Source: Utricularia gibba (taxonomy: Eukaryota; Plantae; Magnoliophyta). Taken from it: a DNA stretch of 64,000 bases. The DNA lies in NCBI GenBank assembly GCA_002189035.1, contig NEEC01000020.1, positions 1,488,001 to 1,552,000 on the forward strand, read 5' to 3'. Below are positions 25,982 to 64,000 of this stretch, piece by piece (position 1 is the stretch's first letter; each line of letters opens with the position of its first letter). Both the position numbers and the translations under genes were made by a program. The notes beneath the pieces are model-generated. The model was not told the origin of the DNA, searched no databases, and saw only the letters and a program-made list of their open reading frames with translations.

Positions 25982-26066
25982 TAAATTTTGGAGGTGAAGT
26001 GTGTCACATTAAACTCTTGAGGCATTTTTGATCATGTGTGTGAATAGTTGGGGGTAAAAATAAACC
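25982..26066. mobile_element. Truncated outer part of a Mutator-like TIR
   Basis: Only the last three periodic motifs of the TIR-like array seen intact at 47360-47627 are present. Confidence 0.6.
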
Positions 26067-27330
26067 TGACCTAGTTAGAATATATCAATCTAAACTGCAA
26101 CTTAAATTTTTACTATTGTATTTTCGATTGGAATTCCGATGTATGTATTAGTGTTTCCTTTATTTTATTGATTTTATTTAAATATGTATTTTTAAAATTT
26201 ATTATTGATGGGGCACAACAATTGTGACTATTATTTTCCATAGGGATTACAATATAAGTAACATTTGTAATATTCTGGATCATTATTTTTGAATAGAAAT
26301 GGATTTCAAATCAAAATGAAAACAAAATTCTTATACCTGACCTCAATTATCATGATTTATATTTTTATACCTGACCACAACAAAGACAAATCATATATTT
26401 AAATTGCAAAGGGCAAATATATTTTGAGGTAGTTCAACTTTAAGCTCGATAAACGTAATATGATGTTATTATATAAAAAAAGTGGTATTTTTTAATTAGA
26501 AAATGAATATCATGACCCAAACCTTATTAATTATTAAAAAATTATTTTCTCGATCAGTTATTCAAAAAAATTATTGCTTGCATTTTTCTAATAGATGGGT
26601 AAATACAGCAAATGTGCATTTGCAATGCTTGAATTTTTTTTTTTTTTATAAAGAAACATTACCACCTCAATGCATAGTTGAAGCACTTGCAATTTTTTTT
26701 CATAAATGCGCAGGCACCACAAACGAACATTTACAGTGATTGTGAAAATTTTAATTTCTTTATAAAAAGCATACGCACTTTAATGCAGCATTTGTGGTGC
26801 TCACAATTTTTTAAAAGAAAATGGGAAGGCAACGTCAGTGCACATTTATTGTGATAATTTTAATTTTTAGAGAATGGGGTCGCCGAGTTTAGTGCAATCC
26901 ACACACCCTCAACTTATTTTTTAAAAAATAAATTACCATGTTGATTTACAAGAAAAAAAAAATTGAAAGACATTCAATGAAATCTTTGAAGTTTTCCATT
27001 AAAGTAAAAAGGAAAAGAATGAATAATTATTTGGATTTGATTATCGCATTCGCCAACTTGGTGCATTAGGGGCCAATGAATTACTAATTTTAGAAAATTA
27101 GGTCATGCGGTTTAATGCAATATGTACTGACCTTGTTTTTTTTTATTAAAAAAAATATTTTTTAAAATAAATCACCACTTTGATTTACAAAAAAGCATTT
27201 GAAAGATCTCTAACGAAATCTTTCAAATTTTCTATTTAATTATAAGAGAAGAAGAAATATAAGTATTTGAGGGCCAATGAATCACTAATTCGTGTAGTTT
27301 GATTCAATCCATGAAGCTAATAAACGTAAA

Positions 27331-27750
27331 TGATAAGTGATTTTGTGTTACTAATATTTGTGTTTTTTATGATTCACTTAGATGGGTTTTGCATTCTTTT
27401 AATCCTACTTTCCTTATCTTTTTAAAGAATTTTATATCTTCATACTATTTTGATCTTTTTGGAGTAAAAGTGTGTTTTGTGATTTTTTAGTACGAATTTG
27501 GAATAATTTGGAGGATTTTCGAACTACTTTGATGAGATTTGGTCTATCCGGATAAAGACTCGGTCAAAGATTCTCGAATAAGATAAGATTCGTATCTTAT
27601 CTTAGAAAATTTGGATCTTATCTTAGAAGATTTATATCAAATCTTAGAAGATGAAGATAGAAAATTTGATGTAAGTCCATCAAGAAAGCCCAACAAATCT
27701 CCACCATTATATAAAAATCCAAAGACGAAGATCAAAAGGGAGCCATGAAC
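27331..27750. mobile_element. Gypsy LTR fragment (Athila/Tat-like)
   Basis: Starts TGATAAGTG, with T-rich LTR composition and ATCTTAGAA micro-repeats. The 3' end was not found. Duplicated at about 48893-49312. Confidence 0.55.
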
Positions 27751-27914
27751 TAGATGTCGACCATATACTTTGTATCAAATAACAAATTCCTCCAAAGGAC
27801 TCGATCATGGGGGCTGGTCCAATTGCACTGTTCTAAAGTAGTTTATGCCGTTAACTTTGATTTTTCAATGTCAAAATGCTTGCTGACTTGTATAGAAAAA
27901 CATTCAACTTGTCT

Positions 27915-28366
27915 AACAAAGTGGGTCACAGTGAACAGCCCCTGGAAACTTTTTACCAAAAAAACACGTCTTGGCAAAGTTGTAACACATGTATGGGGCT
28001 GATGCCTGCCAACTATCGGAAGGTGAAGGAAGTTAGTGATCTGATGATAGGGGAGCCCGTGATTAAAGCCTCAGTGAACGAAAGCTGTAATTATAACGAT
28101 TCTAAGTTAGTGAAATTCATTTTCGGGTAAGTTCCAAATGTTTAACGATCTGAGCACTATATCAAAGAGAGGATCGACATGTTTGTGAAAAATGCGGACT
28201 ACCTATGAAGCTTGATTGTTCCCGGGAACACCTGCATCGCTTAGGTGGAAGGCGAAGAGTGCAATACCACTCTCGAATAGCTAAGGTAGGATTCTAAGCT
28301 TGTGTCAGGAGCTATGGAAGTCTTAGGTAAGATAGTGTTCATGCAACATAGGCCTCCTAAAAGGGA
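27915..28366 (+). pseudogene. rrn23: Nuclear insertion of a plastid 23S rRNA fragment (NUPT), degenerate
   Basis: Recognisable 23S blocks in correct order: TGATGCCTGCC...GAAGGTGAAGGAAGTTAGTGATCTGATGATAGGGGAGCC, GTAATTATAACGATTCTAAG.TAGTGAAATTC..TTTCGGGTAAGTTCC, GATCTGAGCACT, GCTTAGGTGGAAGGCGAAGA, ATACCACTCT, CTTGTGTCAGGA, TAGGCCTCCTAAAAGG. Many C>T/G>A changes and short deletions relative to the plastid sequence as remembered. Confidence 0.85.
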
Positions 28367-30089: not shown

Positions 30090-33000
30090 TTACTAATTCT
30101 TTCATGTGACCAAATTTTACAATCAATGAAAATATTATCTTTTGAAACTTTAAAAGATGGATCTTTTACATTCAAGTTATCAAGTTTTCATCAAGAAGAA
30201 TTTAGAAAATTGTTGACAAACATGATTATTATTGATGATTGTCTTTTTATAACCGATGAGAGTTTAGGATTCAGAAATTTTGTTTATAGTTTACAACCAA
30301 GATTTAAGATTCTTAGTCGTTGTCATGAGATTGGAAAGATTATGTCTTACTACAGGTACGTAGACTTCCATACAAAATATGAACTATATGTGTGTTATTG
30401 ATGTGTGTCGTTTCCACAATAAATTTTAATATTTTTAAAACTCATAAAACACAAAAGCGTAGTACGGGTGTCGAACGCAGGGAATTGTTTTTCAGTGAAT
30501 GGTAAGGTTACACTGGATACAACTGTCACGATTTGCAAACGGTTTTGGAAGTAAAAGTGTGAGAAACGTAAATGATGAAGCCTGAGTAAGGGAATAAGAG
30601 GGGTTTGAACAGACAACTGAAATAAATGTAAGCGATGAACCTTAAATAAACTGAATGTTCCTAGGTTTGGAATCCCACCCGGCTATATTCGTTGCGTCTT
30701 CACTCTTCTCTGGTCTTCTCAAATACTCAGTTATAGGAGTAAGGAATTGCCTACCCTCCCTTACATTTTTTTGCAAGAAGGCACAAGAATAGCCCGATGT
30801 TACTCCTCTTTGGACGAAAGTGAGAATAAGAGGTCCTACTAGCATACCCTCACGGTTGAATTGCACATGTGTGCCCAAGTGTTGCCAATGATCCAATGAG
30901 TCCAGATACGAGGTCACTACCTGTCCATTGATCCTGAGGTACAGCCATAGACAAAACATTGTCTTCCTCCTACCAAAAGGACATGAGTTGGTGTTCTCCA
31001 CCTTACTCCTCTCCAAAACTCGTGGGTAGTGATCAATTAACTATGAATCTTGAATAAGGGGACTGTTACAGAAAAACTGCAATATAGTCGCGTGAAGACA
31101 TACGGAACCCGTTCAGATTCAAAGAAGACATAAAGATAAGCTAATGAAACATAGATCTGGGGGTGTCCCAACCCAGAAACAGAAGTTTCTAGCCGTGGAC
31201 GGCCATACAAACTAAAGGAAACGAACACAGATTCTAGAGAAAAGCTAGAGGAAAATCTTATAGATAAAGAAACAAAGTCTAAAGTAAACTAACTACTACT
31301 TGTCCAACGTCTGAATAGAACTGAACTTCAATGAGAGTCTGAGCTTTCGTATCCCCTTGGTTCCTGCTGTGAATTGGGGTAACTTGCAAGCAAACGTCTG
31401 CTCTAAATTGGGGTAATGATATCGCCTGTCAGAGACTCCCGTGTTCCCTACATCAAGGCTCATAATTAGGTGTCTACAGTCTTCCGGAAATCAAGGGAAT
31501 GTCAACTCGAGAAGATCCAATTTGTCGCCATCTGCTGCCCTTTTGCTCTCACTTCCTACCACGTGTGCACCTCTAGAAAAACTCAATTAAAACTAGCAAA
31601 ATTATTATATAAAATACAAGATTTAGGATAATTACCCTAAACTACATAAAACCTAAATCTCATATTATAGATTTCTAATTAGACTATTCTAATCACATTT
31701 AGACTTAAAAACAACCTAAGAAATACTAAGAAAATGACACTTAAGAGTTATATTGTATATTGGATTGATAAAGATTTCAATTTACAGGTTCTCAATTTTT
31801 CTATCATTCCAAATCACAAAGGTAAGACCATTGGTTATATGATTGAGTGCTACCTCTTAGAATGGGGAATTGAGAATCTACTTACAATGTATGTTAAAAA
31901 TTACGAGTTCTAATGATGTTGTCATATGATACATCAAGGATAAGATGAAGGGTTGGAAAAATATAGTTTTGAATAATGAGTTTGTGCATATGAGATGTTC
32001 TTCTTATTTTAAAAAAATTCATGGTAAAAAATGATCTGAAGTTGTATATTGCATCAATTTTGAAAATTAAAAATGATATCATCTTCTCCATCTAAACTTT
32101 GAACTTTTATGAGTTATCCATCCATTCAAAAAAATTGAAAGTAAGAAACTTATATGTCTTGATGTTGACACTCGGTGCAATTCCACTTATTTGATATTAA
32201 AAAATACCTTAGTTTTTTAAAAGTATTTGAAAGTATGTTTGAGGATCATTGAAATTATATAAATATTTTGGTATCTATAAGAAGAAAGGTCATGCTGAAT
32301 TTCATTTTATCAGTTGTATTAAAGAAGCTGAGTGAAATTAATGAAAAAGAAAGCTTAAAAGATAATTATATTGATCCCCCTGATGCTTTTGATTGAAAAG
32401 TGGCAAAGTGTTTTGTCAAGTTTCTGAAATTTTTCTATGATGCAACAATGAGATTTTTGAAAAGTAAATATTCTAAATGTTAACATTTTATTTCAAGAGA
32501 TTATGAGCATCCCTGGTATTTTAAGTGTTTTATTTGGATATCATGATACAAGTATAGCTTTGGTTGCAATGAAACTGAATGATAAATTCTCAAAGTATTG
32601 GAGTAAATTGAATACAACTAATGCTTTATTGTTTATTGAAACTATTTTAGATATTCGATATAAGTTGAGATTTATCAAGTATTATATTGATAAAATATAT
32701 AATCAAGGGAAGCATGGTTATTTGTGTAAACAAGTGTTGGATAAATTGATGAGCACATTAATTACTTTATTTGATTTTTATGCAAAACTTTATTTTTTTG
32801 CATCTAAAGATGATGATATGTATTTCTCAATCGCTAACTCTTCAAATACTTCTTTGAATGCTAGCTTGGATGACATGTTCAATTCTAATTTTTCTCTAGG
32901 GTCCCAATTCGCTAAAGAACTTGAGAAGGATTTTAATAATTGTAATATCTGAGCTTGCCATCTATTTGGAAGAAAAGTGAAAATTAGTTGGAGAACATGA

Positions 33001-35818: not shown

Positions 35819-37285
35819 TGTTAAAATAAATAATCATATATCCAAAAATAAAAGTGAAATAATCAAATATATAAAAAATCATAGATCATTAATAATTGAT
35901 TGGGTCTAATTTTTTCTATTGTGATCCATATTTATTATATACTTAGATTTCACATGTAATAGTCTAACCCATTGGATCCTAAATTTTAGCATGGTATCAA
36001 AGCATTTGACTTGCAACATAGCTTGGGTGACCAAAATAAGTTTCATTCTAGTTTGAGCTTCTATTAAAAAAAAAAGAAAAAAAGAAAAAGTAAATGCATT
36101 GGGCTTAGACAACAAAAATTAGATCGATCTATGACTTGCCGAATTGAAGACCAGTTCGACTTGAGCACCTAATCCCACATCGAAAAATGAAAGTGAAATA
36201 TTCAAGTATACAAGTAATTATGGATCATTAGTAACCGATTGGATCTAATATTTTCTATTGTGATCCACGTTTCTTATGTACTTGGATTTCACATGTGCTC
36301 GTTCAATCCATCAGATCCTGAATTTAAATATGGTATACAATCAGATAAAAAAAACACAAGTTTTAACCGGATCGAAGCTCAGTTCCACTTGAGGGCGGGC
36401 ATTAGAATACACAATCCTACATCGGAAAATGAAAATTTTATAGTCAAGTATATAAAAAATTGCAGATCACAAATAATCAGTTGAGCCTAACCTTTTCTAA
36501 TGTGATTTACATTTATTATGCACTTGGCTTCACGTGTGTGCTCATGTAACCCATCAAATCCTGAATTTAAATATGATATAAGAGTGTTTGCCTTGCAGCA
36601 TGGCTCGGGTGGTCAAGATGGGTTTCGTTCACGTGTGCTCACCTAAACCATTGGATACTAGAATTTCAACATGGTATCACAGCATTTGCCTTTCAGCACG
36701 GCCTGGGTGGCCAAGATGGGTTTCATTATTGTCTGAATTCCGATTAAAAAAAAAAGAACAAGAAGATTCATTGGGCATAGATGACAAAAAAATTAGATCA
36801 ATTTATAATCTGAGCACTACCTACAACCAGACAAAAAAATACAAGTCTTATTTGGATCGAAGACCAGTTCGACACGAGGGCATCTTTTAGAATACACAAT
36901 CCCACATTGGAAAATAAAAGTGGAATAGTCAAGTATATAACAAACTACATATCACAAGTAATCGATTGAGTCTAATCTTTTCTATTGTGATTCATATTTC
37001 TTGTGTGCTCGCCTGACTCATCGGATCCTGAATTTCAACATGGTATTAGAACATTTGCCTTGCGGCATGACTTAGGTGGCCAAGATGGGTTTTGTATTTG
37101 TCTGAGATTCAATTAACAAAAAAAAAAAAAAAAAAAAACAAGGACATGCATTGAGCTTAGGCAACAAAAAATCAAAATCAACCTATGACCCAATCACTAC
37201 CTACAATCACACAAAAAAAACCAAGTCTTAACTAGATTAAAGACCGGTTCGACTTGAGGGCAAGTATTAGAATACATAATCCGAA
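35819..37285 (+). mobile_element. Tandem-array TRIM (about 5 LTR-internal units)
   Basis: An LTR of about 170 bp (TGTTA/ATTAGAATACACAATCCCACATCGGAAAAT...GGATCCTGAATTTCAACA) alternates with PBS variants (TGGTATCAAAGC 35992, TGGTATAC, TGATATAAGAG, TGGTATCACAGC, TGGTATTAGAAC) and a short internal region ending in the PPT-like TTGAGGGCGGGC. Confidence 0.85.
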
Positions 37286-37308
37286 TTCTCATCCAAGTCT
37301 CTCAATTA

Positions 37309-37592
37309 AAGCATCTTTAGTGGTTTCTGGAAATACTGATGTGGCTTTCCGAAAACTACTATTATTTTTACAGAAATAAGTAATTTGAGGAAATCTCATT
37401 TTATGGAAACCAAAAGGAGGAAATCTTGTTTCCTTATTGAAACCAACTTCCATAAGGAAACTTCACTCTATATTTTTTCAATGATTTTACTACTCGTTTT
37501 CGAAAATTGATAAAGTAATTTAGGAAACTTCGTAAAGAAAACTTAATAAAGAAAAGACACATTACTATTTGCGAGCATCATTAAAGATGCTC
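37309..37592. mobile_element. Tourist-like MITE
   Basis: TIR AAGCATCTTTA / TAAAGATGCTC (10/11) with TSD TTA on both sides. Confidence 0.85.
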
Positions 37593-40960: not shown

Positions 40961-43900
40961 TAAAGATGTCACTGGGTCTCGGTATACCTGGACCCGAACC
41001 GAAACTAACCCGAATGGGTTCGGTTTCGGGCCAAGAAGTGCTAATTTTTTTTCGGGTTCGGGTTGTTTTACATGGACCCAACAAGCTATCGGTCATGTTT
41101 GGGCTTAGCTTTCTAAAACCTGTTGATCCGGATCTGAACCGATGCATAAATATTTTTAAAATATTGATAACATTTAATTTCTTAATGGGCTTAATAATTA
41201 ATATATCCTTAACCCTAATTAATCCTTTCAACTTCTATATCCTTAACCCTAATTCATCATTTCAACTTCTAAAATCATCACAGTGGAAACTTGAAGAGTA
41301 TGTACTACATCATTTTCGAATTTCTATTTTGCAACACTTTCGTTTGTGGTGAATATTTTTTGTTTTGTTTGTTTCATCACAATGGAAACTTGAAGAGTAT
41401 GGACTACATCATTTTCAAATTTCTATTTTGCAACACTTTCATTTGTGATAAATATTTTTTTGTTTTGTTCGTTCAATAGTTATATAATTATTTATTATTT
41501 TTTTATGTGAACTACCTTTTTTCCTGTTTTTTGTTTACGTGTGCCGAGCGGTAGATGGTTTCTTATTGTGCATTTTTCCTGTTTTAGTTTTAGGATTTAG
41601 GGAGCCATAGATTGGTTTTTTAATGGCTAGTGACACTAGCTAGTCAGCACACCACACACCATTCGAATATGGAAATAAAATTATTTTTTTTTTTACAAAA
41701 GTTTCTTATTTTTCAGAAACTTTGATTTTTGATATTTTAATTTTACAATTTTCAATTTTCATGAGTTGAAATTTCAGTGTTTTTTCATTCTAAAACTCTA
41801 AATTCCTAATTCTAACCTTTATGTTTGTATTTTTAATTTCTTTAGATGACATCTCAGCAAGACAGTTCACTAACATCACTTCCATTATTGGGATCTCCAG
41901 ATCAAGGTAGCCGTGGAGTTGATGATGATAATGACCTAGTGAAAGCTGTTGAAATATGACAATGGAATCTCTAAAAAAAGAAAACTAAAATCTGAGATAT
42001 GGGAGCACTTCAAGCAATTCCATGATGATAAGACAAATGAATGGAAAACTCAACGCAATCATTGTCAAAAAGTCATGAGTGGAGACACAAAAACTGGTAC
42101 GTCATCTTTGAAAAGACATTTTAATGATACATGTCCTTGGACATCAGATACTATGAATATTAAGCAAGTGATTTTGAAGATGGGAAATGATAAACAAAAA
42201 ATATTGCACGTCATTAAAATGTAAATTTCTTTTATCAAATAAAATTTATAAACCTGATTCACATCAAATCATATAAAATATATGTATATAGTGGATTAAA
42301 ATCGAACATAAGGAGCTAGATGATTACTATATGAAAGTCAATGCATACAATCAGTATCACGTTAATAGATTTAGTCTTAACTAGGACTAAGGCATAAGTA
42401 TGATAAAATACAGTAAAGAAAAGTAACAAACTTCTCAACTTGGTTATTTTTAAGATGAAATGGGTGATGTCTTGAGATTCCTAGGAAATGTATGCTTATT
42501 ATTAAACACGCTCACATAAACCATAAATTAAACAACTAATAAACAAAGTCTAAGTCTACCTCTCATTAGGGTTATTAAAATGGGTTTCACTATTTCCCCC
42601 CTTTGGATCTATCTTGATTTGTTAAGGAAGTGACGTGACTTATGAATGATTAAGTCTAAAAATTGATTAGCACATTTCTCTCCTTTTCACCCCAAGTAAC
42701 CCCTAAGTACTTAGCCACTTATAATAAGGGAAATAAGAGCGTTTTTATAATACATCCTAAACAACATTTTGTTCTCAAGGCTAAATAACAACATAAGATA
42801 CGTAACAAAGCATAAACAGTAAGTTGTTCAAGTAGGGAAAATGAAAACTAGTCTCAGCTAAGAACAGTGTTCATCAATAACAAAAGTAAATCTTCAAATG
42901 GAAACTTATTCTTCTGAATCGCCGTCCCCCTCCTTCTTCCCTCTAGAAAAATTCTCTAGAAACATGTGTCGTGTGCCCCAATGGGGGAGCTCTTGTTTCT
43001 CTCTCTATCTTGTCCCTTTTTTATCCAAAATCCTCATTTCTCATCTACTTAGATTTTGTGTTCTTATTTTCAGACTTTTATCTTATCCTTTGTCATTACA
43101 CTATTCATATCTGACTCCTTGGGATTTGTGTTGCCGATATATGTTGCATTATTCAAAGAAAACTATTAGAAGTAAAGTTAGGACTAAATCAAAGATTTAG
43201 TCCCAACTAAGATTAAAAAAACACAACTACGGTATTATGTGCAAAAATATAGAATTAGATAGTAAAGTTTAAATATTAAAGTACAATATGAGTCATTTCA
43301 ATATATTCAATTACTCAAAAATATGTGTTATCAAGAAACTTTTGAAATATTGCAAAATTTGTGTTTGATCAAGATCAGTCAACAGAAAACTTTGCAAAAA
43401 TGATAATATTGCATGATTATATACTAAGTATGGCAGATCATGTTGGTTTTAAAAATTTGTGTATTAGTTTGAATCCAAGTTTTAAAACTATTACGAGAAA
43501 TACATTCAGGCATGACATTCTTACTCTTTATACCAAGTACAAATCCATGTACTACAAGGAGTTAGAAAAGGTAAAAAGTCGAATTGGTGTAACGACTAAT
43601 ATGCATACATCTCAGAATAACAATAAAGGATTTATGGCAATTACGGTTCATTACATTGACGAGAATTGGTCATTGAAAAGTTTTATTCTAAGGTATGTTT
43701 TATTTGATGAATATGATCTTAATAGTGATTATTGGCTATTGTACTTTAAATTTAATGTAGTATTTTTTTTCAGATTTGTATATCTTCATGCAACACATAT
43801 AGTAGAAGCAATTTTTGAAGTTGAAGATGAAAAAATAGAATCGTATGTTCAGGACTTAGATAATAAAATAATTTAGAATTTTTGATAATTTTATTTAATT

Positions 43901-47359: not shown

Positions 47360-47627
47360 TAGTATGGAATAAAAATGCACACTTTAAAATATTTGAGTGA
47401 AAATATATATTTAAAACTTTGATGAAAGTTAGGGAATTTTTGTATCATCAAAAACATTTTGGGGTAAAAATATATTTTTCAAACATATGTGACATATTTA
47501 AACATTTTTATAAATATTTTGGGGCATTGTTGCATCTGTGTGTAAATTTTGGAGGTGAAGTGTGTCACATTAAACTCTTGAGGCATTTTTGATCATGTGT
47601 GTGAATAGTTGGGGGTAAAAATAAACC
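47360..47627. mobile_element. Mutator-like terminal inverted repeat (right end; partner TIR not found)
   Basis: About 7 periodic AAA(A/T)TTTTGGGG(T/C)A-type motifs (about 47387, 47425, 47453, 47513, 47545, 47572, 47603), ending GGGGGTAAAAATAAACC. Confidence 0.6.
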
Positions 47628-49476
47628 TGACCTAGTTAGAATATATCAATCTAAACTGCAACTTAAATTTTTACTATTGTATTTTCGATTGGAATTCCGA
47701 TGTATGTATTAGTGTTTCCTTTATTTTATTGATTTTATTTAAATATGTATTTTTAAAATTTATTATTGATGGGGCACAACAATTGTGACTATTATTTTCC
47801 ATAGGGATTACAATATAAGTAACATTTGTAATATTCTGGATCATTATTTTTGAATAGAAATGGATTTCAAATCAAAATGAAAACAAAATTCTTATACCTG
47901 ACCTCAATTATCATGATTTATATTTTTATACCTGACCACAACAAAGACAAATCATATATTTAAATTGCAAAGGGCAAATATATTTTGAGGTAGTTCAACT
48001 TTAAGCTCGATAAACGTAATATGATGTTATTATATAAAAAAAAGTGGTATTTTTTAATTAGAAAATGAATATCATGACCCAAACCTTATTAATTATTAAA
48101 AAATTATTTTCTCGATCAGTTATTCAAAAAAATTATTGCTTGCATTTTTCTAATAGATGGGTAAATACAGCAAATGTGCATTTGCAATGCTTGAATTTTT
48201 TTTTTTTTTATAAAGAAACATTACCACCTCAATGCATAGTTGAAGCACTTGCAATTTTTTTTCATAAATGCGCAGGCACCACAAACGAACATTTACAGTG
48301 ATTGTGAAAATTTTAATTTCTTTATAAAAAGCATACGCACTTTAATGCAGCATTTGTGGTGCTCACAATTTTTTAAAAGAAAATGGGAAGGCAACGTCAG
48401 TGCACATTTATTGTGATAATTTTAATTTTTAGAGAATGGGGTCGCCGAGTTTAGTGCAATCCACACACCCTCAACTTATTTTTTAAAAAATAAATTACCA
48501 TGTTGATTTACAAGAAAAAAAAAATTGAAAGACATTCAATGAAATCTTTGAAGTTTTCCATTAAAGTAAAAAGGAAAAGAATGAATAATTATTTGGATTT
48601 GATTATCGCATTCGCCAACTTGGTGCATTAGGGGCCAATGAATTACTAATTTTAGAAAATTAGGTCATGCGGTTTAATGCAATATGTACTGACCTTGTTT
48701 TTTTTTATTAAAAAAAATATTTTTTAAAATAAATCACCACTTTGATTTACAAAAAAGCATTTGAAAGATCTCTAACGAAATCTTTCAAATTTTCTATTTA
48801 ATTATAAGAGAAGAAGAAATATAAGTATTTGAGGGCCAATGAATCACTAATTCGTGTAGTTTGATTCAATCCATGAAGCTAATAAACGTAAATGATAAGT
48901 GATTTTGTGTTACTAATATTTGTGTTTTTTATGATTCACTTAGATGGGTTTTGCATTCTTTTAATCCTACTTTCCTTATCTTTTTAAAGAATTTTATATC
49001 TTCATACTATTTTGATCTTTTTGGAGTAAAAGTGTGTTTTGTGATTTTTTAGTACGAATTTGGAATAATTTGGAGGATTTTCGAACTACTTTGATGAGAT
49101 TTGGTCTATCCGGATAAAGACTCGGTCAAAGATTCTCGAATAAGATAAGATTCGTATCTTATCTTAGAAAATTTGGATCTTATCTTAGAAGATTTATATC
49201 AAATCTTAGAAGATGAAGATAGAAAATTTGATGTAAGTCCATCAAGAAAGCCCAACAAATCTCCACCATTATATAAAAATCCAAAGACGAAGATCAAAAG
49301 GGAGCCATGAACTAGATGTCGACCATATACTTTGTATCAAATAACAAATTCCTCCAAAGGACTCGATCATGGGGGCTGGTCCAATTGCACTGTTCTAAAG
49401 TAGTTTATGCCGTTAACTTTGATTTTTCAATGTCAAAATGCTTGCTGACTTGTATAGAAAAACATTCAACTTGTCT

Positions 49477-49928
49477 AACAAAGTGGGTCACAGTGAACAG
49501 CCCCTGGAAACTTTTTACCAAAAAAACACGTCTTGGCAAAGTTGTAACACATGTATGGGGCTGATGCCTGCCAACTATCGGAAGGTGAAGGAAGTTAGTG
49601 ATCTGATGATAGGGGAGCCCGTGATTAAAGCCTCAGTGAACGAAAGCTGTAATTATAACGATTCTAAGTTAGTGAAATTCATTTTCGGGTAAGTTCCAAA
49701 TGTTTAACGATCTGAGCACTATATCAAAGAGAGGATCGACATGTTTGTGAAAAATGCGGACTACCTATGAAGCTTGATTGTTCCCGGGAACACCTGCATC
49801 GCTTAGGTGGAAGGCGAAGAGTGCAATACCACTCTCGAATAGCTAAGGTAGGATTCTAAGCTTGTGTCAGGAGCTATGGAAGTCTTAGGTAAGATAGTGT
49901 TCATGCAACATAGGCCTCCTAAAAGGGA
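49477..49928 (+). pseudogene. rrn23: Duplicate of the plastid 23S rRNA fragment (NUPT)
   Basis: Copy of 27915-28366 at offset 21562. Confidence 0.85.
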
Positions 49929-51651
49929 TTTATATATGCACATTCAAATTCGGAATTGCCTCAATTATCTTTCTTTTTTCAAAGAAAAAAAAATTAACTT
50001 AGATAAAATGGATCGATATAAGCACAATTATACGCCCACTCATATGCTACGTTTAAAAGGTTTTCCCAAAAACTATCCTATACACATTTTATTTTTATTA
50101 AATCAAAATTTTGGAATGAACAAATTGCATTTTGAAAAAGTTCATGGAAATCTAACAAATCTTGTGAACTAGTATCCATTTGAATGAGATGTCAAACGAA
50201 ACTCCTTTTTGATTAACATTGAACTAGTATCCTAGCATTGAAATACTGAAAAAAACTATAAAAAGAAAAATTCTCAAGTATCTGTGATCATGACACGTCA
50301 CTAGAAATAAGAACAAGAATTCCAACATTAGTAATTAACAATGCATTGATCAAATATCCGACATCTAAATGAAAATCATTATTGAGGACCCAACCCAAAG
50401 AAGGATGGCATAATGGATTGATCAATTACATACAACAATACTTTTTCTAGAGTATTGTACAATGTTTTTTATACTAACTTTAAAATTAGGCATATATACA
50501 TTGAAATAAGTTTAGGATGGATAAACTCTGAAGACACTCTAACCAAATATGGAGAGAACATAAATTTAGGAAAATTGAATGTCAGATAAAATATATAATA
50601 TCATAGAAATTGAATTTGAATGGTGACGAGACCATAAATATTGATAATTTTAACTACTATTTATTTGTTAAATAGAAAAATTAATTGGCAACATGATGGC
50701 TGTAGTTAACAATCAAGTACTCGTAAAGAGACACATACCACGAATATTTGTATTTGTTGTCGGGAAAAACAGAAGCCCTGTTTCTCTTAAGATAGGAACT
50801 TAAAATTGAACCAAAATTATAATTCACGTATATTGATATGTTATGTCCATAAAAGTAGCCACACCGAAAAAAAGAAAACCATGAGTGCCCATATATCAAA
50901 GGAATTCCACTAAGAACTTGAAAGGAAAGTGAACTAAGGGTTGATTTCTTTTTCTAAAAAATCGATCCTCATCTGCTTTTCACATCATGTTTATATACTT
51001 GCATAAAGTAAAAATAACAAGATAATAAAGTAAAAAACCATTGGTTCCCGAAACTCCATTTGAGGTGTAGGGTGCTTAGTGTGGGCTCCTGGACCCGATG
51101 CAGTGTGGGGTGCAAGAATGAATATCTGATTGAGGGATAAGGAGGTCTTTGTGACCATAACTCCCGTTGAATTCCATGGGGCTGATGTTCTATAAGATGT
51201 AGCTTCACAATAAAGGTTCTAACCTCCTCGGGCAACTTCTCTATACTCTTACTTTATTAGACCAATTACGCTTTCATACCTTGAGGGTTACTAACAATTT
51301 CCTACGATGATCTCAACCCCCTTATGATGTGAGAGAACAATTTCATTCCCCATAACATTAAACTTTAGCTTTGAGATGCCAATTAGTTAGGGCTAGGGTT
51401 CAATCCTATATTTTGTGTAGATGATATGAGATCTTTGGCATTATGACATTTTTTTATTGCACTTTATCCAATGAAAAATGTTAGCTTGTACGTGATAACA
51501 TTTCCATACTCTATTAGCTTGTGGACTGATACCATCAAAAAAAGCACAGCTTGATTAATTGTGATTGAAAATTGAAACTTAACTAAATATTGTGACTTTT
51601 ATTTTCTTATTTCTAAAACAATATATCATAGTAACTTCTTATATTCTTCGA

Positions 51652-54600
51652 TTACTAATTCTTTCATGTGACCAAATTTTACAATCAATGAAAATATTAT
51701 CTTTTGAAACTTTAAAAGATGGATCTTTTACATTCAAGTTATCAAGTTTTCATCAAGAAGAATTTAGAAAATTGTTGACAAACATGATTATTATTGATGA
51801 TTGTCTTTTTATAACCGATGAGAGTTTAGGATTCAGAAATTTTGTTTATAGTTTACAACCAAGATTTAAGATTCTTAGTCGTTGTCATGAGATTGGAAAG
51901 ATTATGTCTTACTACAGGTACGTAGACTTCCATACAAAATATGAACTATATGTGTGTTATTGATGTGTGTCGTTTCCACAATAAATTTTAATATTTTTAA
52001 AACTCATAAAACACAAAAGCGTAGTACGGGTGTCGAACGCAGGGAATTGTTTTTCAGTGAATGGTAAGGTTACACTGGATACAACTGTCACGATTTGCAA
52101 ACGGTTTTGGAAGTAAAAGTGTGAGAAACGTAAATGATGAAGCCTGAGTAAGGGAATAAGAGGGGTTTGAACAGACAACTGAAATAAATGTAAGCGATGA
52201 ACCTTAAATAAACTGAATGTTCCTAGGTTTGGAATCCCACCCGGCTATATTCGTTGCGTCTTCACTCTTCTCTGGTCTTCTCAAATACTCAGTTATAGGA
52301 GTAAGGAATTGCCTACCCTCCCTTACATTTTTTTGCAAGAAGGCACAAGAATAGCCCGATGTTACTCCTCTTTGGACGAAAGTGAGAATAAGAGGTCCTA
52401 CTAGCATACCCTCACGGTTGAATTGCACATGTGTGCCCAAGTGTTGCCAATGATCCAATGAGTCCAGATACGAGGTCACTACCTGTCCATTGATCCTGAG
52501 GTACAGCCATAGACAAAACATTGTCTTCCTCCTACCAAAAGGACATGAGTTGGTGTTCTCCACCTTACTCCTCTCCAAAACTCGTGGGTAGTGATCAATT
52601 AACTATGAATCTTGAATAAGGGGACTGTTACAGAAAAACTGCAATATAGTCGCGTGAAGACATACGGAACCCGTTCAGATTCAAAGAAGACATAAAGATA
52701 AGCTAATGAAACATAGATCTGGGGGTGTCCCAACCCAGAAACAGAAGTTTCTAGCCGTGGACGGCCATACAAACTAAAGGAAACGAACACAGATTCTAGA
52801 GAAAAGCTAGAGGAAAATCTTATAGATAAAGAAACAAAGTCTAAAGTAAACTAACTACTACTTGTCCAACGTCTGAATAGAACTGAACTTCAATGAGAGT
52901 CTGAGCTTTCGTATCCCCTTGGTTCCTGCTGTGAATTGGGGTAACTTGCAAGCAAACGTCTGCTCTAAATTGGGGTAATGATATCGCCTGTCAGAGACTC
53001 CCGTGTTCCCTACATCAAGGCTCATAATTAGGTGTCTACAGTCTTCCGGAAATCAAGGGAATGTCAACTCGAGAAGATCCAATTTGTCGCCATCTGCTGC
53101 CCTTTTGCTCTCACTTCCTACCACGTGTGCACCTCTAGAAAAACTCAATTAAAACTAGCAAAATTATTATATAAAATACAAGATTTAGGATAATTACCCT
53201 AAACTACATAAAACCTAAATCTCATATTATAGATTTCTAATTAGACTATTCTAATCACATTTAGACTTAAAAACAACCTAAGAAATACTAAGAAAATGAC
53301 ACTTAAGAGTTATATTGTATATTGGATTGATAAAGATTTCAATTTACAGGTTCTCAATTTTTCTATCATTCCAAATCACAAAGGTAAGACCATTGGTTAT
53401 ATGATTGAGTGCTACCTCTTAGAATGGGGAATTGAGAATCTACTTACAATGTATGTTAAAAATTACGAGTTCTAATGATGTTGTCATATGATACATCAAG
53501 GATAAGATGAAGGGTTGGAAAAATATAGTTTTGAATAATGAGTTTGTGCATATGAGATGTTCTTCTTATTTTAAAAAAATTCATGGTAAAAAATGATCTG
53601 AAGTTGTATATTGCATCAATTTTGAAAATTAAAAATGATATCATCTTCTCCATCTAAACTTTGAACTTTTATGAGTTATCCATCCATTCAAAAAAATTGA
53701 AAGTAAGAAACTTATATGTCTTGATGTTGACACTCGGTGCAATTCCACTTATTTGATATTAAAAAATACCTTAGTTTTTTAAAAGTATTTGAAAGTATGT
53801 TTGAGGATCATTGAAATTATATAAATATTTTGGTATCTATAAGAAGAAAGGTCATGCTGAATTTCATTTTATCAGTTGTATTAAAGAAGCTGAGTGAAAT
53901 TAATGAAAAAGAAAGCTTAAAAGATAATTATATTGATCCCCCTGATGCTTTTGATTGAAAAGTGGCAAAGTGTTTTGTCAAGTTTCTGAAATTTTTCTAT
54001 GATGCAACAATGAGATTTTTGAAAAGTAAATATTCTAAATGTTAACATTTTATTTCAAGAGATTATGAGCATCCCTGGTATTTTAAGTGTTTTATTTGGA
54101 TATCATGATACAAGTATAGCTTTGGTTGCAATGAAACTGAATGATAAATTCTCAAAGTATTGGAGTAAATTGAATACAACTAATGCTTTATTGTTTATTG
54201 AAACTATTTTAGATATTCGATATAAGTTGAGATTTATCAAGTATTATATTGATAAAATATATAATCAAGGGAAGCATGGTTATTTGTGTAAACAAGTGTT
54301 GGATAAATTGATGAGCACATTAATTACTTTATTTGATTTTTATGCAAAACTTTATTTTTTTGCATCTAAAGATGATGATATGTATTTCTCAATCGCTAAC
54401 TCTTCAAATACTTCTTTGAATGCTAGCTTGGATGACATGTTCAATTCTAATTTTTCTCTAGGGTCCCAATTCGCTAAAGAACTTGAGAAGGATTTTAATA
54501 ATTGTAATATCTGAGCTTGCCATCTATTTGGAAGAAAAGTGAAAATTAGTTGGAGAACATGAAACTTTTGATACCCTAATTTGATAGAAAAATAATCCTT

Positions 54601-55012
54601 CAAGATGTCATCTTCTTTCTCAAATGATTAGAGAAGTGTTGGCGATTTCAATTTCTACCATATCATCTAAATCAGGTTTTAGTGCAAGTGGGCATATGCT
54701 TGATTCATATATACGTTCTCTTAATCCAAAAATGGTAGAGGCTCTTATTTGTTGCCACAATTGGCTGAAAGAATAACCACATTTGCTTGACATTCATTGA
54801 TCCATGAGAGGAGTTTCATTTAATGATGTAGAGAAGTATGGAGATATCTTCAGTGGTAATACTTGAATTTTTCCTATTCTATCTTTGTTATTTGAAATAT
54901 TTCTCATTTAGTATATTACATTGAAATGTACTTTTTTTATTAATTATAGATGTATACTTCGATAGTTCTTCTTCAAAAGAAGATGTAAGGACAATGGATG
55001 TTGATGAATATT
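51652..55012 (+). pseudogene. Duplicate hAT transposase remnant (with solo LTR 51961-53308)
   Basis: Copy of 30090-33450 at offset 21562. Confidence 0.9.
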
Positions 55013-57380
55013 AGATATCATTTCCTTTTTTAATATCTAAAAGTTTCAGATTTATTTGTAACTAATGATTCATTCTCAATCTTTATTGTTTCGTGATTTT
55101 TTTTGAAGTTATTTTGTTACCTATTGCAATGACTTTGCAGCATTATTAGATTGAATGGGATCAAATAACGAAGGTTGTTGTCTGCTCTTTAACTTTGTTG
55201 GAAATGTTTTTCTATTGAGTATTTTATGTATTATTAGTTACCAGATTATATAATGTTAGAATTTGGAATTTTTAGTAATTATGATGTTTGAGTAATGTAT
55301 AACACTTATTCTTAGCTGTTCAACCGCTTGTTCACCTGCTTTCCACTTGTTGTATTTATATTTCAATTTGTAGGTTTTTTGACAATAATATTAACTGATG
55401 ATTTTAAAATATATATAATCTACTATTAATGAATCAAAATAATAATATAGGTTTAAACTGTATGACTACGTGTTTACTCACTCCTAATCATATCCTTCAA
55501 GATAACATGTCTTATTATCTCTATACCCTTTAAAAAAGAGAAAAGTTAGAGAAATTTCATTTTATTATTTCTCGATTACTCGAAAATTTTCTATTCCAAC
55601 TAGCGTTTTTCCAGTGACTTTACTCCTCCAATCTCTAGCAAAAGTCACCAAAGGTATTTTAATTCCATCTCTGGATATTTCTCCTTGATATGCGGAAGAA
55701 GTTTCAAAATATGCGTTGAGAAGATGAAAAGTCTTAATGTATTGAAAAGGTAAACTCAAGATACAAAGTATTGAGACGTAGGTCCCGTTTGGTACAATTA
55801 TTTATTTTATAGTCCATTAAGATTATTATTTTTAAATAAACACATTCATTATTTAGATTGGAGATGCATTTGATAACATTGTATAAGAATATGAATGTTT
55901 ATATTATTTTGTATTTGATAGATTGTTGTTAAATAGATGATTTTATGAAAATTACCAAAATATACTCATTATTATTTGAAGTTTTTTAACATTATTTTCC
56001 CCTATTCTTCAAATTTTGTTCATCGAAGATTTTAGGATTTGTGTTTATGTTTTACTTTCATATAAGATCTATCTATGTTATCACTTTATTACACTTCCAT
56101 CTCATCAACTCCCATTCTACCCATCAGACCCAAGAAGAAATCGGCATGTATTGAAGGTGGAGAAGGTTCTAGGGCTAACTGTAAGGAGAGGAATAGAACT
56201 AAGATAATGAGAGTTTGTTAGTGTAAAAGTAGACCCCCTCTTCCCCACTTTAAGTTTCACATTCCAAAATTAATTCTATATGTGTGAAGATAAATAAAAT
56301 TGTCTATTTTCACAATCGCTACCAAACATACTTCTAATTTAAATTTCTTGTTAAAATGCATTAACAACCTTACCAAACAAATCTGCTTATTTGTACAACA
56401 TTTCCTGTTATATGCATTTACTTGAGCTAATAAGTGTTTGCTAATCTGTCATGGTCATCCGGTCAACACTCCCTATAACTCCTCAATATTCATATTGCAA
56501 TGATTCTGGGGTTGTAGAATGATAAAATTGGTGCCTTTTCATGACCTCCACCACTGTCGGTACCTAAGATGCCCTCCCATGCGATCCGCCTTATTTTGGA
56601 AGCTTTTAAAGCCAGTTTGCAGATTCCACCACCACCCATTCATAGCTCTTTTATACGCTCTTCATCCCCACATTTATGAAACTTGTCACATACCTCATTT
56701 TTCTCAACATTCAAAAGTCAGAATTTTCTTTTAATTTCTTTTTTTCATTTTATTTTTTTCTCTGATAGCACCTATTTTGATTCAAAATCTTTATGTAGAT
56801 AGGAAAAATTTTCTTTTTTTTGCCCGATGAGGCTGCATCTCTAGCTTGAAGCCTTAGGGAAACCAAGGCTGAATTCTAGCTTTTTGCAGAATTCTAACCA
56901 GCCGCCGATTATTTTCTGCAAAAATAATTTATGCTAGCTTATTTTCTGCCCGATAAGAAGCCTGAATTCTAGCTTTTTTTTTCATTTCGGTCCTAGTTAG
57001 GAAGCAAAAAACTTCTACTACCCGACACGGACTCTAAAGATTCCCTCCTCAATCACAGCTCATAGTATTCTTCTTCCTCCAGACAAGCACCTCAAGGGGC
57101 TTTGGATGAATGAGGAACGATTTGCCTCCTCATCTTTTTTTATAAAATAAGCTAATGCATAGTGTTTTCTTTTTGTCTTGCAGAACACAGAATGAATAGC
57201 CTCATCAAGTCTACCTTCGGTTACAATTTAAAACACCAAGGCACTTGCTAATTCGGTGGTAGATGGAAGCAAGGTGCCTCACTTTCCTTGAGTTACTTCA
57301 TCGGATTTTAGTTGAATGTCAACTTGATAGGCACTATGATTTTACAGAAGAAAGTTCTGGAAATCAGTAGAGTTTATAGA

Positions 57381-58848
57381 TGTTAAAATAAATAATCATA
57401 TATCCAAAAATAAAAGTGAAATAATCAAATATATAAAAAATCATAGATCATTAATAATTGATTGGGTCTAATTTTTTCTATTGTGATCCATATTTATTAT
57501 ATACTTAGATTTCACATGTAATAGTCTAACCCATTGGATCCTAAATTTTAGCATGGTATCAAAGCATTTGACTTGCAACATAGCTTGGGTGACCAAAATA
57601 AGTTTCATTCTAGTTTGAGCTTCTATTAAAAAAAAAAGAAAAAAAGAAAAAGTAAATGCATTGGGCTTAGACAACAAAAATTAGATCGATCTATGACCTG
57701 CCGAATTGAAGACCAGTTCGACTTGAGCACCTAATCCCACATCGAAAAATGAAAGTGAAATATTCAAGTATACAAGTAATTATGGATCATTAGTAACCGA
57801 TTGGATCTAATATTTTCTATTGTGATCCACGTTTCTTATGTACTTGGATTTCACATGTGCTCGTTCAATCCATCAGATCCTGAATTTAAATATGGTATAC
57901 AATCAGATAAAAAAAACACAAGTTTTAACCGGATCGAAGCTCAGTTCCACTTGAGGGCGGGCATTAGAATACACAATCCTACATCGGAAAATGAAAATTT
58001 TATAGTCAAGTATATAAAAAATTGCAGATCACAAATAATCAGTTGAGCCTAACCTTTTCTAATGTGATTTACATTTATTATGCACTTGGGCTTCACGTGT
58101 GTGCTCATGTAACCCATCAAATCCTGAATTTAAATATGATATAAGAGTGTTTGCCTTGCAGCATGGCTCGGGTGGTCAAGATGGGTTTCGTTCACGTGTG
58201 CTCACCTAAACCATTGGATACTAGAATTTCAACATGGTATCACAGCATTTGCCTTTCAGCACGGCCTGGGTGGCCAAGATGGGTTTCATTATTGTCTGAA
58301 TTCCGATTAAAAAAAAAAGAACAAGAAGATTCATTGGGCATAGATGACAAAAAAATTAGATCAATTTATAATCTGAGCACTACCTACAACCAGACAAAAA
58401 AATACAAGTCTTATTTGGATCGAAGACCAGTTCGACACGAGGGCATCTTTTAGAATACACAATCCCACATTGGAAAATAAAAGTGGAATAGTCAAGTATA
58501 TAACAAACTACATATCACAAGTAATCGATTGAGTCTAATCTTTTCTATTGTGATTCATATTTCTTGTGTGCTCGCCTGACTCATCGGATCCTGAATTTCA
58601 ACATGGTATTAGAACATTTGCCTTGCGGCATGACTTAGGTGGCCAAGATGGGTTTTGTATTTGTCTGAGATTCAATTAACAAAAAAAAAAAAAAAAAAAA
58701 ACAAGGACATGCATTGAGCTTAGGCAACAAAAAATCAAAATCAACCTATGACCCAATCACTACCTACAATCACACAAAAAAAACCAAGTCTTAACTAGAT
58801 TAAAGACCGGTTCGACTTGAGGGCAAGTATTAGAATACATAATCCGAA
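57381..58848 (+). mobile_element. Duplicate tandem-array TRIM
   Basis: Copy of 35819-37285. Confidence 0.85.
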
Positions 58849-58871
58849 TTCTCATCCAAGTCTCTCAATTA

Positions 58872-59155
58872 AAGCATCTTTAGTGGTTTCTGGAAATACT
58901 GATGTGGCTTTCCGAAAACTACTATTATTTTTACAGAAATAAGTAATTTGAGGAAATCTCATTTTATGGAAACCAAAAGGAGGAAATCTTGTTTCCTTAT
59001 TGAAACCAACTTCCATAAGGAAACTTCACTCTATATTTTTTCAATGATTTTACTACTCGTTTTCGAAAATTGATAAAGTAATTTAGGAAACTTCGTAAAG
59101 AAAACTTAATAAAGAAAAGACACATTACTATTTGCGAGCATCATTAAAGATGCTC
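58872..59155. mobile_element. Duplicate Tourist-like MITE
   Basis: Copy of 37309-37592, with TTA TSDs. Confidence 0.85.
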
Positions 59156-60752
59156 TTAGCATTGCCTATGAATGTTTGGTGTCACGTTTCCATGAGAGAG
59201 GTTGGAGGGTTCTAGGCCGCTCAATGCACAAGTTGCTGTTTCTTAGGAGAGTAGGAAGGAAGGAGAATGCTATCAAAGAGGTAGTTAAGGAAAAAACTGA
59301 GGAGAGAGTGGAGGCCTAACTTCTCCAAGTGGAGAAGTGTTGAGTGGGGATGACTTTAAAGCTAGAGGCCAATAGCACGGTGCTAAATGAAATGGAATGG
59401 ACATCACTTGTTCACACTGTAGAGTGGATAGTATGCGGGCGAATACTTTTCTTCGATACTTAGCTTCCAGGCTCTTCGGGTCGTAAGAGCAGTTGCACCT
59501 AGCCTCTATTGAGGATTTTTAGCTCCTAGTCTTCCCGCAGTTCCGAAAATGGTTGGTCGGTTGTACATATGCATTTACCAAACGCAGACTTGCCTTTTCG
59601 TTCATTTCTTCTGTATTCACTTTTACAGGTTACGTACGATATGTAAGTTTCTTTTCAGTTATGCGCAACAAGTGAGCAGATTTGTTTCCTCGCAGTTGCT
59701 ATTTCTTTTCATTTTTTCAGCCATGTCTTCATCTTTTGTTTTTAAAATGTGTTTTGAATTCAGTTTTGCTTCACATATCATTAGTTTTTCAGAATTCAAC
59801 AATAATTTATGCAATTTGATGATTCCAGCCCCAATTTTTTAGATTTAAACCCTAATTTATGTTCATGATTTACCAAGATTCTCTAACATAAATTATTTTC
59901 ATTTTTTATTGTGCTGCAAATTAATTTTTATGGACTTTAGTTTTTTCATGATATTCATATGCTATTATCATTTTAATTTTACACTTAATTTTGCATATCT
60001 ATTGTTCTATTTCCAGATTGAAACATTAAATTATTACATCTTGTATCATCATTTTTTTATTACAATTTTTTGTAGGAAATGATTACAGAGGATTAACATC
60101 TCAACGAATTATATAAGCAAATACTTTAGATGCAAGATAGAATGAATACAAACTTATTCTTGTTTTAGCTTGACTAAATGTTAATAATGATTCTGAGAAA
60201 GATAACTTCACACAAAGGAAACAAATTTTGGAAGAAGATATTTGATTATCTATTATGAAGTAATACCACTAGTTACTTGTAGCATGGATACAATTAGAAA
60301 AAAATGAAAAAATTTGAGCTCTGATAATGTCAAGAGAAGTTTGACTATAATGAATTTGATTTCAAGCAACAAGTCATGTAGCTTTTTAAAATTGATCAAC
60401 AAGGAGATTTCATTGATATTAAATATTGAGAAACATTATACCATGACTCAAAGTAGATGTCAATATGAAAATTAATGTCAAGTTTATTTTTTTGAGTGTA
60501 TTTACTATATTAAATGTCTTTTTATAAATCACAGAAATTGGTAGGTGCTTAAATGGAAAAGAATTATAAGAGAGTGTCGTATGTGCATCAATCAAATGAA
60601 CAAGGATTACCTTCACAACTATCACTGCCTTTAATAAAAGAAGAAAGATCTTTAGGATAAAATTTAGCAAATGTAAATAAAATGAAAGGCAATTGTCTAA
60701 GTCTACTTCTTCTTCTTTCAAGACTAATCACTTGGAAGGTATCTTGGTAGTT

Positions 60753-61794
60753 GATTTGGCAGTTCAATCAAGTATATTTTGCTAATATGCTTCAAAGACT
60801 TTAAAATAAAGATGTGAACAAGTTTATTCCATGACAACAAAAAACAATTCATGATATAACTTATCATGACATTGCAAACGCCAATTTAGTGAATGAAGAC
60901 CAGAGCACTTCTAAAGATGAGGAAAATGCATTTGTCACTTTTTTTTCACTGCTATTCAATTTTGATTTTCATAACAATATATGGGATCTCCAATAACAGA
61001 GTATTTGAAATGTTTGCTTGTATGTGGAGAGACTCAGAGCTTTTACATAATCTTTGGAAACACTGATTGCATAGATTGAGAGTGAAAAAATTGTCTCATT
61101 TTATTGCAAGGTCAATTTAAATGTGGAGATCATTGAAAACCTTCATTAATGTTAGAAGTCGTAGCTTTTGAGGATATATGAATTTCACATGCATTTTTAA
61201 TAATGTCAATTGTGAATAATGATTTAAATATCTTACAACATTTTCTTTATTAGATGTAGATCTCGGACCTATGAATGGGGATATATATTTTTCATTGTTT
61301 TCTGTAATAATTTTTAAAAATTGAAAAATGGATAATCTAAATGAAATGCATAATGGTATTGGTCCAAAAGTGCAATTTACTTTTAATGAAAATTTTTATG
61401 AAATGGAATATTATTTGGTTGATGGAATTCAACTTGATTGGGCTGTTTTTATGAAGTCCATTACTCTTCAAGACCAAAAAACTTGACTTTTCGTTAAATT
61501 TCAGGAGAGTGCTCAAAAAAATATGGAAATCACTTTCGGTATTTTGTTTGCAATACTTAGAATACCTGGACAAGTTTGGGATAAGACTTAGAAATATTTT
61601 ATGCATGTATAAAATATCTCCAGTAGCTGAAGGCGGCTGTCATAAAAGCCACCCAAGCCCATGTATTGTTGACGGCTGTAGTAAAGAGCAAGAGCTTCTG
61701 AACCTGAAGGTAATGCCAAGATGCTCATTCTACTCTTCAGCTACTGCTCACAATATCATGAGGCTCAAGAAAATAATGAATTATATTTAAAGAA
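60753..61794 (+). pseudogene. Duplicate Harbinger transposase remnant (with mini-element 61621-61746)
   Basis: Copy of 39190-40231 at offset 21563. Confidence 0.85.
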
Positions 61795-62359
61795 TGATGA
61801 GGTGTTTGTCCAAATGAATACATTAGAGAAAAAGATCATTCCACCAGGACCAATGACTAGGAGTAAGAGCAAGATGTTTGATGATACATTTAAGGCTTTT
61901 CTTAATACTATTGGAATCAAACATGGACTTGAAGACATCTCATCAAAAGACCTCAACTACTTGAAGGTGGATTTATCTTAGAGTATTGGACTTGCTAAAT
62001 TTTTCTATTTCATTTAGTTTGGGCCAAGTAATGTTAGAGCCCAATTCTAAAGTATAAATACTCTAAAGTTGTACTCTTTTATAACTTTTAGTTCATTTCA
62101 TATATGTTGTGAGGATTCTCTTCTTCTTTAAGTGTTTGAATACTCTTGACTTATGAAGCTTTGAGCTTGTGGTGTTCTAGGATTATCACTTCCAATCTTC
62201 TCTCTTTTCTGAAGTGTGGCTCTTAATTTTCTTTGTTTCGAAGTCTAATTGCAAGAGATTCATTCTCTTGAGGATAGACTTGGGTGGTTTTCTTTTTAAG
62301 CTTCAAAATCACCTCTTGTTCGTCGATTGTTAATCTCTATAGATTAGAGGGTCACATCA
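61795..62359 (+). mobile_element. Duplicate CRM-type solo LTR
   Basis: Copy of 40232-40796. Confidence 0.7.
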
Positions 62360-62523
62360 CAAGATAAATAACTATGTGGAATGTCAGAGTAGATGCCGGG
62401 GATCCAATAGGAAGATGCGAATTTTCCCTTCGGAGGTTACCGCCTAAGTATGTGTTTGGGCCTTGAAGACTTAACTTGTACAGTTCATGCAACATAAGAC
62501 TGGTTTTATTATTGAGTGTACAC

Positions 62524-64000
62524 TAAAGATGTCACTGGGTCTCGGTATACCTGGACCCGAACCGAAACTAACCCGAATGGGTTCGGTTTCGGGCCAAGAA
62601 GTGCTAATTTTTTTTCGGGTTCGGGTTGTTTTACATGGACCCAACAAGCTATCGGTCATGTTTGGGCTTAGCTTTCTAAAACCTGTTGATCCGGATCTGA
62701 ACCGATGCATAAATATTTTTAAAATATTGATAACATTTAATTTCTTAATGGGCTTAATAATTAATATATCCTTAACCCTAATTAATCCTTTCAACTTCTA
62801 TATCCTTAACCCTAATTCATCATTTCAACTTCTAAAATCATCACAGTGGAAACTTGAAGAGTATGTACTACATCATTTTCGAATTTCTATTTTGCAACAC
62901 TTTCGTTTGTGGTGAATATTTTTTGTTTTGTTTGTTTCATCACAATGGAAACTTGAAGAGTATGGACTACATCATTTTCAAATTTCTATTTTGCAACACT
63001 TTCATTTGTGATAAATATTTTTTTTTTGTTCGTTCAATAGTTATATAATTATTTATTATTTTTTTATGTGAACTACCTTTTTTCCTGTTTTTTGTTTACG
63101 TGTGCCGAGCGGTAGATGGTTTCTTATTGTGCATTTTTCCTGTTTTAGTTTTAGGATTTAGGGAGCCATAGATTGGTTTTTTAATGGCTAGTGACACTAG
63201 CTAGTCAGCACACCACACACCATTCGAATATGGAAATAAAATTATTTTTTTTTTTACAAAAGTTTCTTATTTTTCAGAAACTTTGATTTTTGATATTTTA
63301 ATTTTACAATTTTCAATTTTCATGAGTTGAAATTTCAGTGTTTTTTCATTCTAAAACTCTAAATTCCTAATTCTAACCTTTATGTTTGTATTTTTAATTT
63401 CTTTAGATGACATCTCAGCAAGACAGTTCACTAACATCACTTCCATTATTGGGATCTCCAGATCAAGGTAGCCGTGGAGTTGATGATGATAATGACCTAG
63501 TGAAAGCTGTTGAAATATGACAATGGAATCTCTAAAAAAAGAAAACTAAAATCTGAGATATGGGAGCACTTCAAGCAATTCCATGATGATAAGACAAATG
63601 AATGGAAAACTCAACGCAATCATTGTCAAAAAGTCATGAGTGGAGACACAAAAACTGGTACGTCATCTTTGAAAAGACATTTTAATGATACATGTCCTTG
63701 GACATCAGATACTATGAATATTAAGCAAGTGATTTTGAAGATGGGAAATGATAAACAAAAAATATTGCACGTCATTAAAATGTAAATTTCTTTTATCAAA
63801 TAAAATTTATAAACCTGATTCACATCAAATCATATAAAATATATGTATATAGTGGATTAAAATCGAACATAAGGAGCTAGATGATTACTATATGAAAGTC
63901 AATGCATACAATCAGTATCACGTTAATAGATTTAGTCTTAACTAGGACTAAGGCATAAGTATGATAAAATACAGTAAAGAAAAGTAACAAACTTCTCAAC
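62524..64000 (+). mobile_element. Duplicate hAT element, 5' part (with solo LTR from 63749), truncated by the window end
   Basis: Copy of 40961 onward, with TAAAGATGTC at 62524 and TGATAAAC at 63749. Confidence 0.85.

Follow-up and report, generated by a model that had tools for sequence, protein, structure and literature searches.

We analysed a 64,000-bp stretch of the Utricularia gibba genome (assembly GCA_002189035.1, contig NEEC01000020.1, positions 1,488,001 to 1,552,000; hereafter the window, numbered from its first letter), in which a 21,561-bp block with one intact gene for an L-type lectin receptor kinase (LecRK) is followed head-to-tail by a nearly identical sequence. Our favoured reading, to which we give a probability of roughly 0.7, is that this is a real and very recent segmental duplication of a transposon-rich block, that it arose by a non-homologous event, and that the one intact gene of the block encodes a clade-IV-like LecRK. 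As such it is an ordinary young structural variant and an instance of a well-known kind of event, with a function that is putative at most. If real, it offers a clean example of a receptor-kinase gene that gains a second copy, along with its regulatory surroundings, through non-homologous segmental duplication and before the copies diverge. In practice it is chiefly useful as a prompt to check copy number in assembly GCA_002189035.1.

The duplicated unit and its boundaries

Self-BLAST of the window returned one long direct repeat, in which 25982-42439 matches 47543-64000 over 16,460 columns at 99.951% identity, with 4 mismatches and 3 gap openings. A repeat of such length and closeness cannot be chance. 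Measured at either end of the compared stretch, the period is 21,561 bp. It equals the length of the unit, so the second copy begins at the base right after the end of the first, without a spacer. Copy 1 (25982-47542, forward strand) is complete, and its identity with the sequence from 47543 onward begins exactly at 25982. Of copy 2 (47543-64000, forward strand), the first 16,458 bp are visible; the match reaches the last base of the window, and the true end of the copy lies past it, at a predicted position of about 69104. The left boundary is sharp: identity ceases at 25981/25982, and the 100-base stretches that precede the two copies are unrelated. There are no Ns in the window. At 47542/47543, where the end of the unit meets its start, there is no gap; this joint is expected to be the sole novel adjacency. 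The sequence-only reading of this DNA had described a block at 25982-47542 that repeats head-to-tail from 47543 at about 99.95% identity over 16.4 kb, and self-BLAST confirms both the coordinates and the percentage.

The LecRK gene occupies 44488-46464 on the forward strand and lies well within the unit, with about 2 kb of unit DNA upstream and 1.1 kb downstream. No other LecRK-like sequence was found within the window. By period arithmetic, the second LecRK is predicted at 66049-68025, outside the window, and the same figure given by the sequence-only reading is arithmetically correct. That the LecRK gene itself is duplicated in tandem is therefore extrapolated from the period. A complete copy 2 would mean two near-identical LecRK genes with identical flanks, with doubled dosage as the sole immediate consequence.

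The joint in sequencing runs

Two queries were used to look for the joint in sequencing runs. The first covered 6 kb across the joint (45001-51000), and the share of its words held by each run was scored. Runs X1 and X2 of sample S1 held 0.96 and 0.90 of these words and runs X3 and X4 of sample S2 held 0.90 and 0.80, all of them from 2013. The share was 0.59 in run X5 of sample S3, which comes from a "plant metagenome" study of 2016, and 0.41 in run X6 of sample S4 (2019). The runs holding words of this region carry one common organism label. The second query was the 60-mer at 47513-47572, all 30 of whose 31-letter words cross 47542/47543, and two of these words were sampled. Both were present in five runs, namely X3, X4, X11, and X12 (sample S2, study P1, 2013) and X5 (sample S3, study P2, 2016). 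Neither of the two sampled words of 47513-47572 occurred in runs X6 to X8 or X10.

A joint made by the assembler should not occur in contigs from other read sets. Since five runs, from two studies, have the joint words, it is very probable that unit end and unit start are physically adjacent.

Differences between the copies and probable age of the duplication

The four substitutions between the copies (given as copy 1/copy 2) are G/A at 29347/50909, T/C at 36136/57698, G/A at 39416/60979, and T/C at 39929/61492. All four are transitions, which would have a probability of 0.012 under random change; two of them fall in a CpG context, and the remaining two in a CHG and a CHH context. Such a pattern is expected where methylated cytosines in repeats are deaminated. 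The four substitutions look like real mutations rather than consensus noise, and allelic differences would look alike. Of the three indels, one concerns a single A within an A-run (26474), another a single G (36525), and the third a pair of bases within a T-run (41461-41462).

With four substitutions over 16,455 sites, K is 2.4e-4 (95% Poisson range 0.7e-4 to 6.2e-4). At commonly used mutation rates, borrowed from other plants, this corresponds to about 17,000 generations (4,700-44,000) or about 9,000 years (2,500-24,000), which points to a possible age of the duplication on the scale of 10^4 generations or years. The true age would be lower if some of the differences are consensus errors and higher if gene conversion has homogenised the copies. 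At the observed rates, the 1,977-bp open reading frame (ORF) of the LecRK would on average contain about 0.5 substitutions and 0.36 indels, so even a complete second LecRK could read as frameshifted in the assembly.

Probable origin of the duplication

A sensitive self-comparison found no repeat common to the left flank and the unit end. Because no repeats flank the unit, we infer a non-homologous origin. The 21,561-bp block would have been copied by end-joining between sister chromatids or by a replication template switch; scoring of microhomology at the joint needs the right flank. Unequal crossing-over between flanking or dispersed long repeats was excluded, there being no repeat homology at the boundaries. 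We also considered whether the unit might itself be a mobile element. It starts with TAAATT and ends with GTGTG, with neither TC...CTRR nor TG...CA, and it has neither terminal inverted or direct repeats nor homology at the boundaries. A Helitron, long terminal repeat (LTR), or terminal inverted repeat origin was rejected on these grounds.

Alternative explanations of the repeat

Several points weigh against a real and complete duplication. Runs X1 and X2 of sample S1 hold nearly all of 45001-51000 (0.96 and 0.90) but neither of the sampled joint words. The support for the joint consists of two sampled words, and contigs built from the reads were searched rather than the reads. The assembly may have been made from the plant material of samples S2 and S3, in which case the joint would be physical but not seen in an independent plant. 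Consensus error may account for two of the three indels, which sit in homopolymer-like runs. Finally, copy 2 is cut by the end of the window, and 5.1 kb of it, including the LecRK, are extrapolated.

A haplotype false duplication had been named as the main alternative in the sequence-only reading. Under this explanation, the assembler would have laid two haplotypes, or overlapping read layouts, of a single 21.6-kb locus end to end, and the genome would hold one copy. The divergence of 0.05% fits allelic differences in a mostly selfing or clonal plant, and in sample S1 the sequence on either side of the joint is present while the joint words are missing. Erroneous duplications produced during long-read assembly, by haplotype retention or overlap mis-joins, are also alike in their near-identical adjacent copies, few differences, and some homopolymer indels. 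They are unlike the present case in that the joint words are found here in read-derived contigs and the joint is gapless. Moreover, repeats longer than the reads are as a rule collapsed by assemblers, not expanded. An assembly artefact is weakened as an alternative by the joint-spanning words in five runs of two studies (2013 and 2016), and we consider it unlikely.

The duplication could also be real but partial or interspersed. In such an arrangement (U1-U2-U1), the first 16.4 kb of the unit, or somewhat more, would have been copied downstream of the segment with the LecRK, leaving the gene single-copy and its dosage unchanged. The repeat is visible only up to the window end at 64000, which would allow this. 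In addition, short G-rich motifs are found on both sides of 47542/47543 and are weakly similar to each other, so the adjacency of unit end and unit start could be old. However, the similarity across the joint is weak, gappy, and AT-rich (score 56), and the arrangement needs two novel joints instead of one. A 173-bp tandem repeat of 1.8 copies (25653-25975) ends 6 bp before the left breakpoint, and its reach up to 25975 suggests that it is the left flank and the unit start that form an old adjacency, as a simple tandem duplication predicts. A partial duplication therefore seems improbable to us beside a complete head-to-tail copy.

We give a low probability to an array of more than two copies, some of them collapsed during assembly. 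Noisy long reads generally have difficulty resolving a unit of 21.6 kb at 99.95% identity, and the joint words occur in X5 and in each of the four S2 runs, though coverage is modest in some of these runs.

A possible copy-number difference between samples

The runs of S1 (X1 and X2) and S2 (X3, X4, X11, and X12) come from one 2013 study, and both samples cover the surrounding 6 kb well but differ in the joint words. The lack of joint words in S1 may be a result of a copy-number difference between the samples, or could be a sampling or coverage effect, which is conceivable because depth at the joint would be half that over the duplicated unit. Joint words in five of five runs of S2 and S3 against none of two runs of S1 are suggestive only. 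That the duplication is a presence/absence polymorphism in the sequenced material, with the joint in S2 and S3 and absent from S1, is accordingly a tentative idea that we hold to be rather doubtful. If true, it would represent a segregating or clonally arisen copy-number change, caught within about 10^4 generations of its origin. The gene affected would be a receptor kinase that evolves unusually fast, in a plant lineage whose genomes are known to turn over rapidly. If S1 is truly without the joint, gene copy number in this plant would be changing very quickly, and one could test directly what doubling a single LecRK does.

An intact and unusually diverged LecRK

The LecRK gene is intronless and encodes a protein of 658 aa. 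Its lectin domain (Lectin_legB, PF00139, E = 1.5e-74) spans residues 24-272 and covers profile positions 2-249 of 250, and its kinase domain (Pkinase, E = 2e-48) spans residues 341-602. The N-terminus is hydrophobic and signal-peptide-like, and the strongest hydropathy peak (residues 282-305) is followed by basic residues; the signal peptide and the single transmembrane span between the lectin and kinase domains are assigned by hydropathy only. All five catalytic motifs of an RD kinase are present (GKGGFGKV at 347, VAVK at 366, HRDIK at 463, DFG at 483, and APE at 509). An N-terminal legume lectin, a putative signal peptide and transmembrane span, and Ser/Thr kinase motifs together place the protein among the L-type LecRKs. 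Judging by these motifs, it is intact and catalytically competent, and is probably active, while being unusually diverged.

The best full-length relatives are Lamiales proteins with 56-60% identity, of which many carry the automatic annotation LecRK-IV.1 or IV.1-like, and the protein-database homology search returned no protein above about 60% identity. A scan of a metagenome collection with the LecRK protein found relatives only at 55% identity or less, from other plants. A search for contigs encoding the LecRK (with two choices of start) and two neighbouring ORFs found none on record, and the exact 40-mer at 47303-47342 had no match in metagenome contigs. In a maximum-likelihood tree, the LecRK groups with two Genlisea aurea proteins (support 100/99) inside the Lamiales set. 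We refer to it as clade-IV-like, a placement in clade IV being limited by its very long branch and by a tree that was built without Arabidopsis clade references.

The end branch of the LecRK has a length of 0.83 vs a median of 0.18, or 4.5 times the median of its relatives. It retains 181 of the 199 columns that are near-invariant in 90 homologues (91%), the lowest value among 91 sequences, and several of its changes at family near-invariant columns lie in the activation segment. This points to fast evolution or recently relaxed constraint. With LecRK-IV.1-like kinases (Arabidopsis clade IV; potato StLecRK-IV.1, PMC9016858) the protein has the domain order in common, and its best-named relatives are IV.1 or IV.1-like. 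It is unlike them in its identity of only 58-60% to the nearest proteins, its long end branch, and its altered activation-segment residues.

Immune and dosage interpretations

L-type LecRKs commonly expand by local duplication, and their genes are intronless. Several of the top matches to our LecRK are fused double-LecRK gene models of more than 1,000 aa. Typical LecRK arrays consist of old, diverged copies a few kb apart, in contrast to the 21.6-kb segmental copy described here, which is 99.95% identical and made up mostly of transposon remains. In soybean, the Rhg1 locus is a 31-kb tandem unit that contains several expressed genes and is present in as many as about ten copies, for which dosage-dependent nematode resistance and variation between accessions have been demonstrated. 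The U. gibba repeat is like Rhg1 in its multi-kb head-to-tail unit, the near identity of its copies, a joint without long flanking repeats, and a gene from a defence-associated family. It is unlike Rhg1 in having at most two assembled copies and one gene, and in being known from sequence alone.

The sequence-only reading had called the LecRK "immune-type". This was a generalisation from the family and is unsupported for this protein, which is clade-IV-like and very diverged; the one clade IV.1 study found describes a potato member, StLecRK-IV.1, as a negative regulator of late-blight resistance (PMC9016858). As a special case of our favoured reading, the duplication could be an adaptive, Rhg1-like copy-number variant, with LecRK dosage under selection and copy number varying among plants. 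The LecRK and its flanks are intact within the unit, and joint words that occur in some samples and are absent from S1, which covers the region well, could reflect a segregating copy-number difference. On the other hand, the four substitutions between the copies allow no selection test, the clade is not uniformly made up of positive immune receptors (PMC9016858), the LecRK is the most diverged at conserved sites among the 91 compared sequences, and the region is transposon-rich. An adaptive change in immune-receptor dosage is thus unsupported, and we regard it as very unlikely. The duplication is most likely neutral or of unknown effect.

Transposon remains and other repeats

We used Pfam scans to evaluate all other ORFs of at least 45 aa in the unit, leaving out the ORF at 26503-26739. 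The LecRK is the sole ORF among those scanned that has a non-transposon Pfam domain, and every other match is a transposase fragment of the hAT or PIF/Harbinger type. A hAT transposase fragment with an RNase-H-like fold lies at 32503-32952 on the forward strand (PF14372, E = 2.3e-11), and a BED zinc-finger fragment, which is probably hAT-related, at 41949-42224 on the same strand (PF02892, E = 3.2e-4). Further matches were to a hAT dimerisation region and a PIF/Harbinger "Plant_tran" piece. No retrotransposon domains were found in the unit by Pfam scans of ORFs or by self-comparison. These results agree with the description of the unit as transposon debris plus one intact L-type LecRK, as far as the ORF test reaches, since it would miss a short multi-exon gene without a Pfam domain.

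Two kinds of tandem repeat lie inside the unit. A diverged satellite-like array of about 1.4 kb at 35821-37282, with many self-matches of 67-80% at short offsets, is found again in copy 2 at 57383-58845; the array at 35821-37282 was not reported by Tandem Repeats Finder. A 99-bp tandem pair is located at 41275-41473.

Other repeats involve the left flank. The stretches 3781-4958 (left flank) and 42187-43334 (just upstream of the LecRK, beside the BED-finger fragment) are 1.1-1.2 kb long and 72% similar, and are probably two old copies of one hAT-like element. A Copia-type LTR retrotransposon occupies 8464-14514 in the left flank, with gag-pre-integrase and integrase core domains at 10320-10871. 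Its LTRs (8464-8970 and 13995-14514) are 88.7% identical, and the element is far older than the duplication. A short tandem array at 23347-23610 has a 56-bp unit in about four copies, and the start of the window (1-333) is occupied by a repeat whose period is about 60-122 bp.

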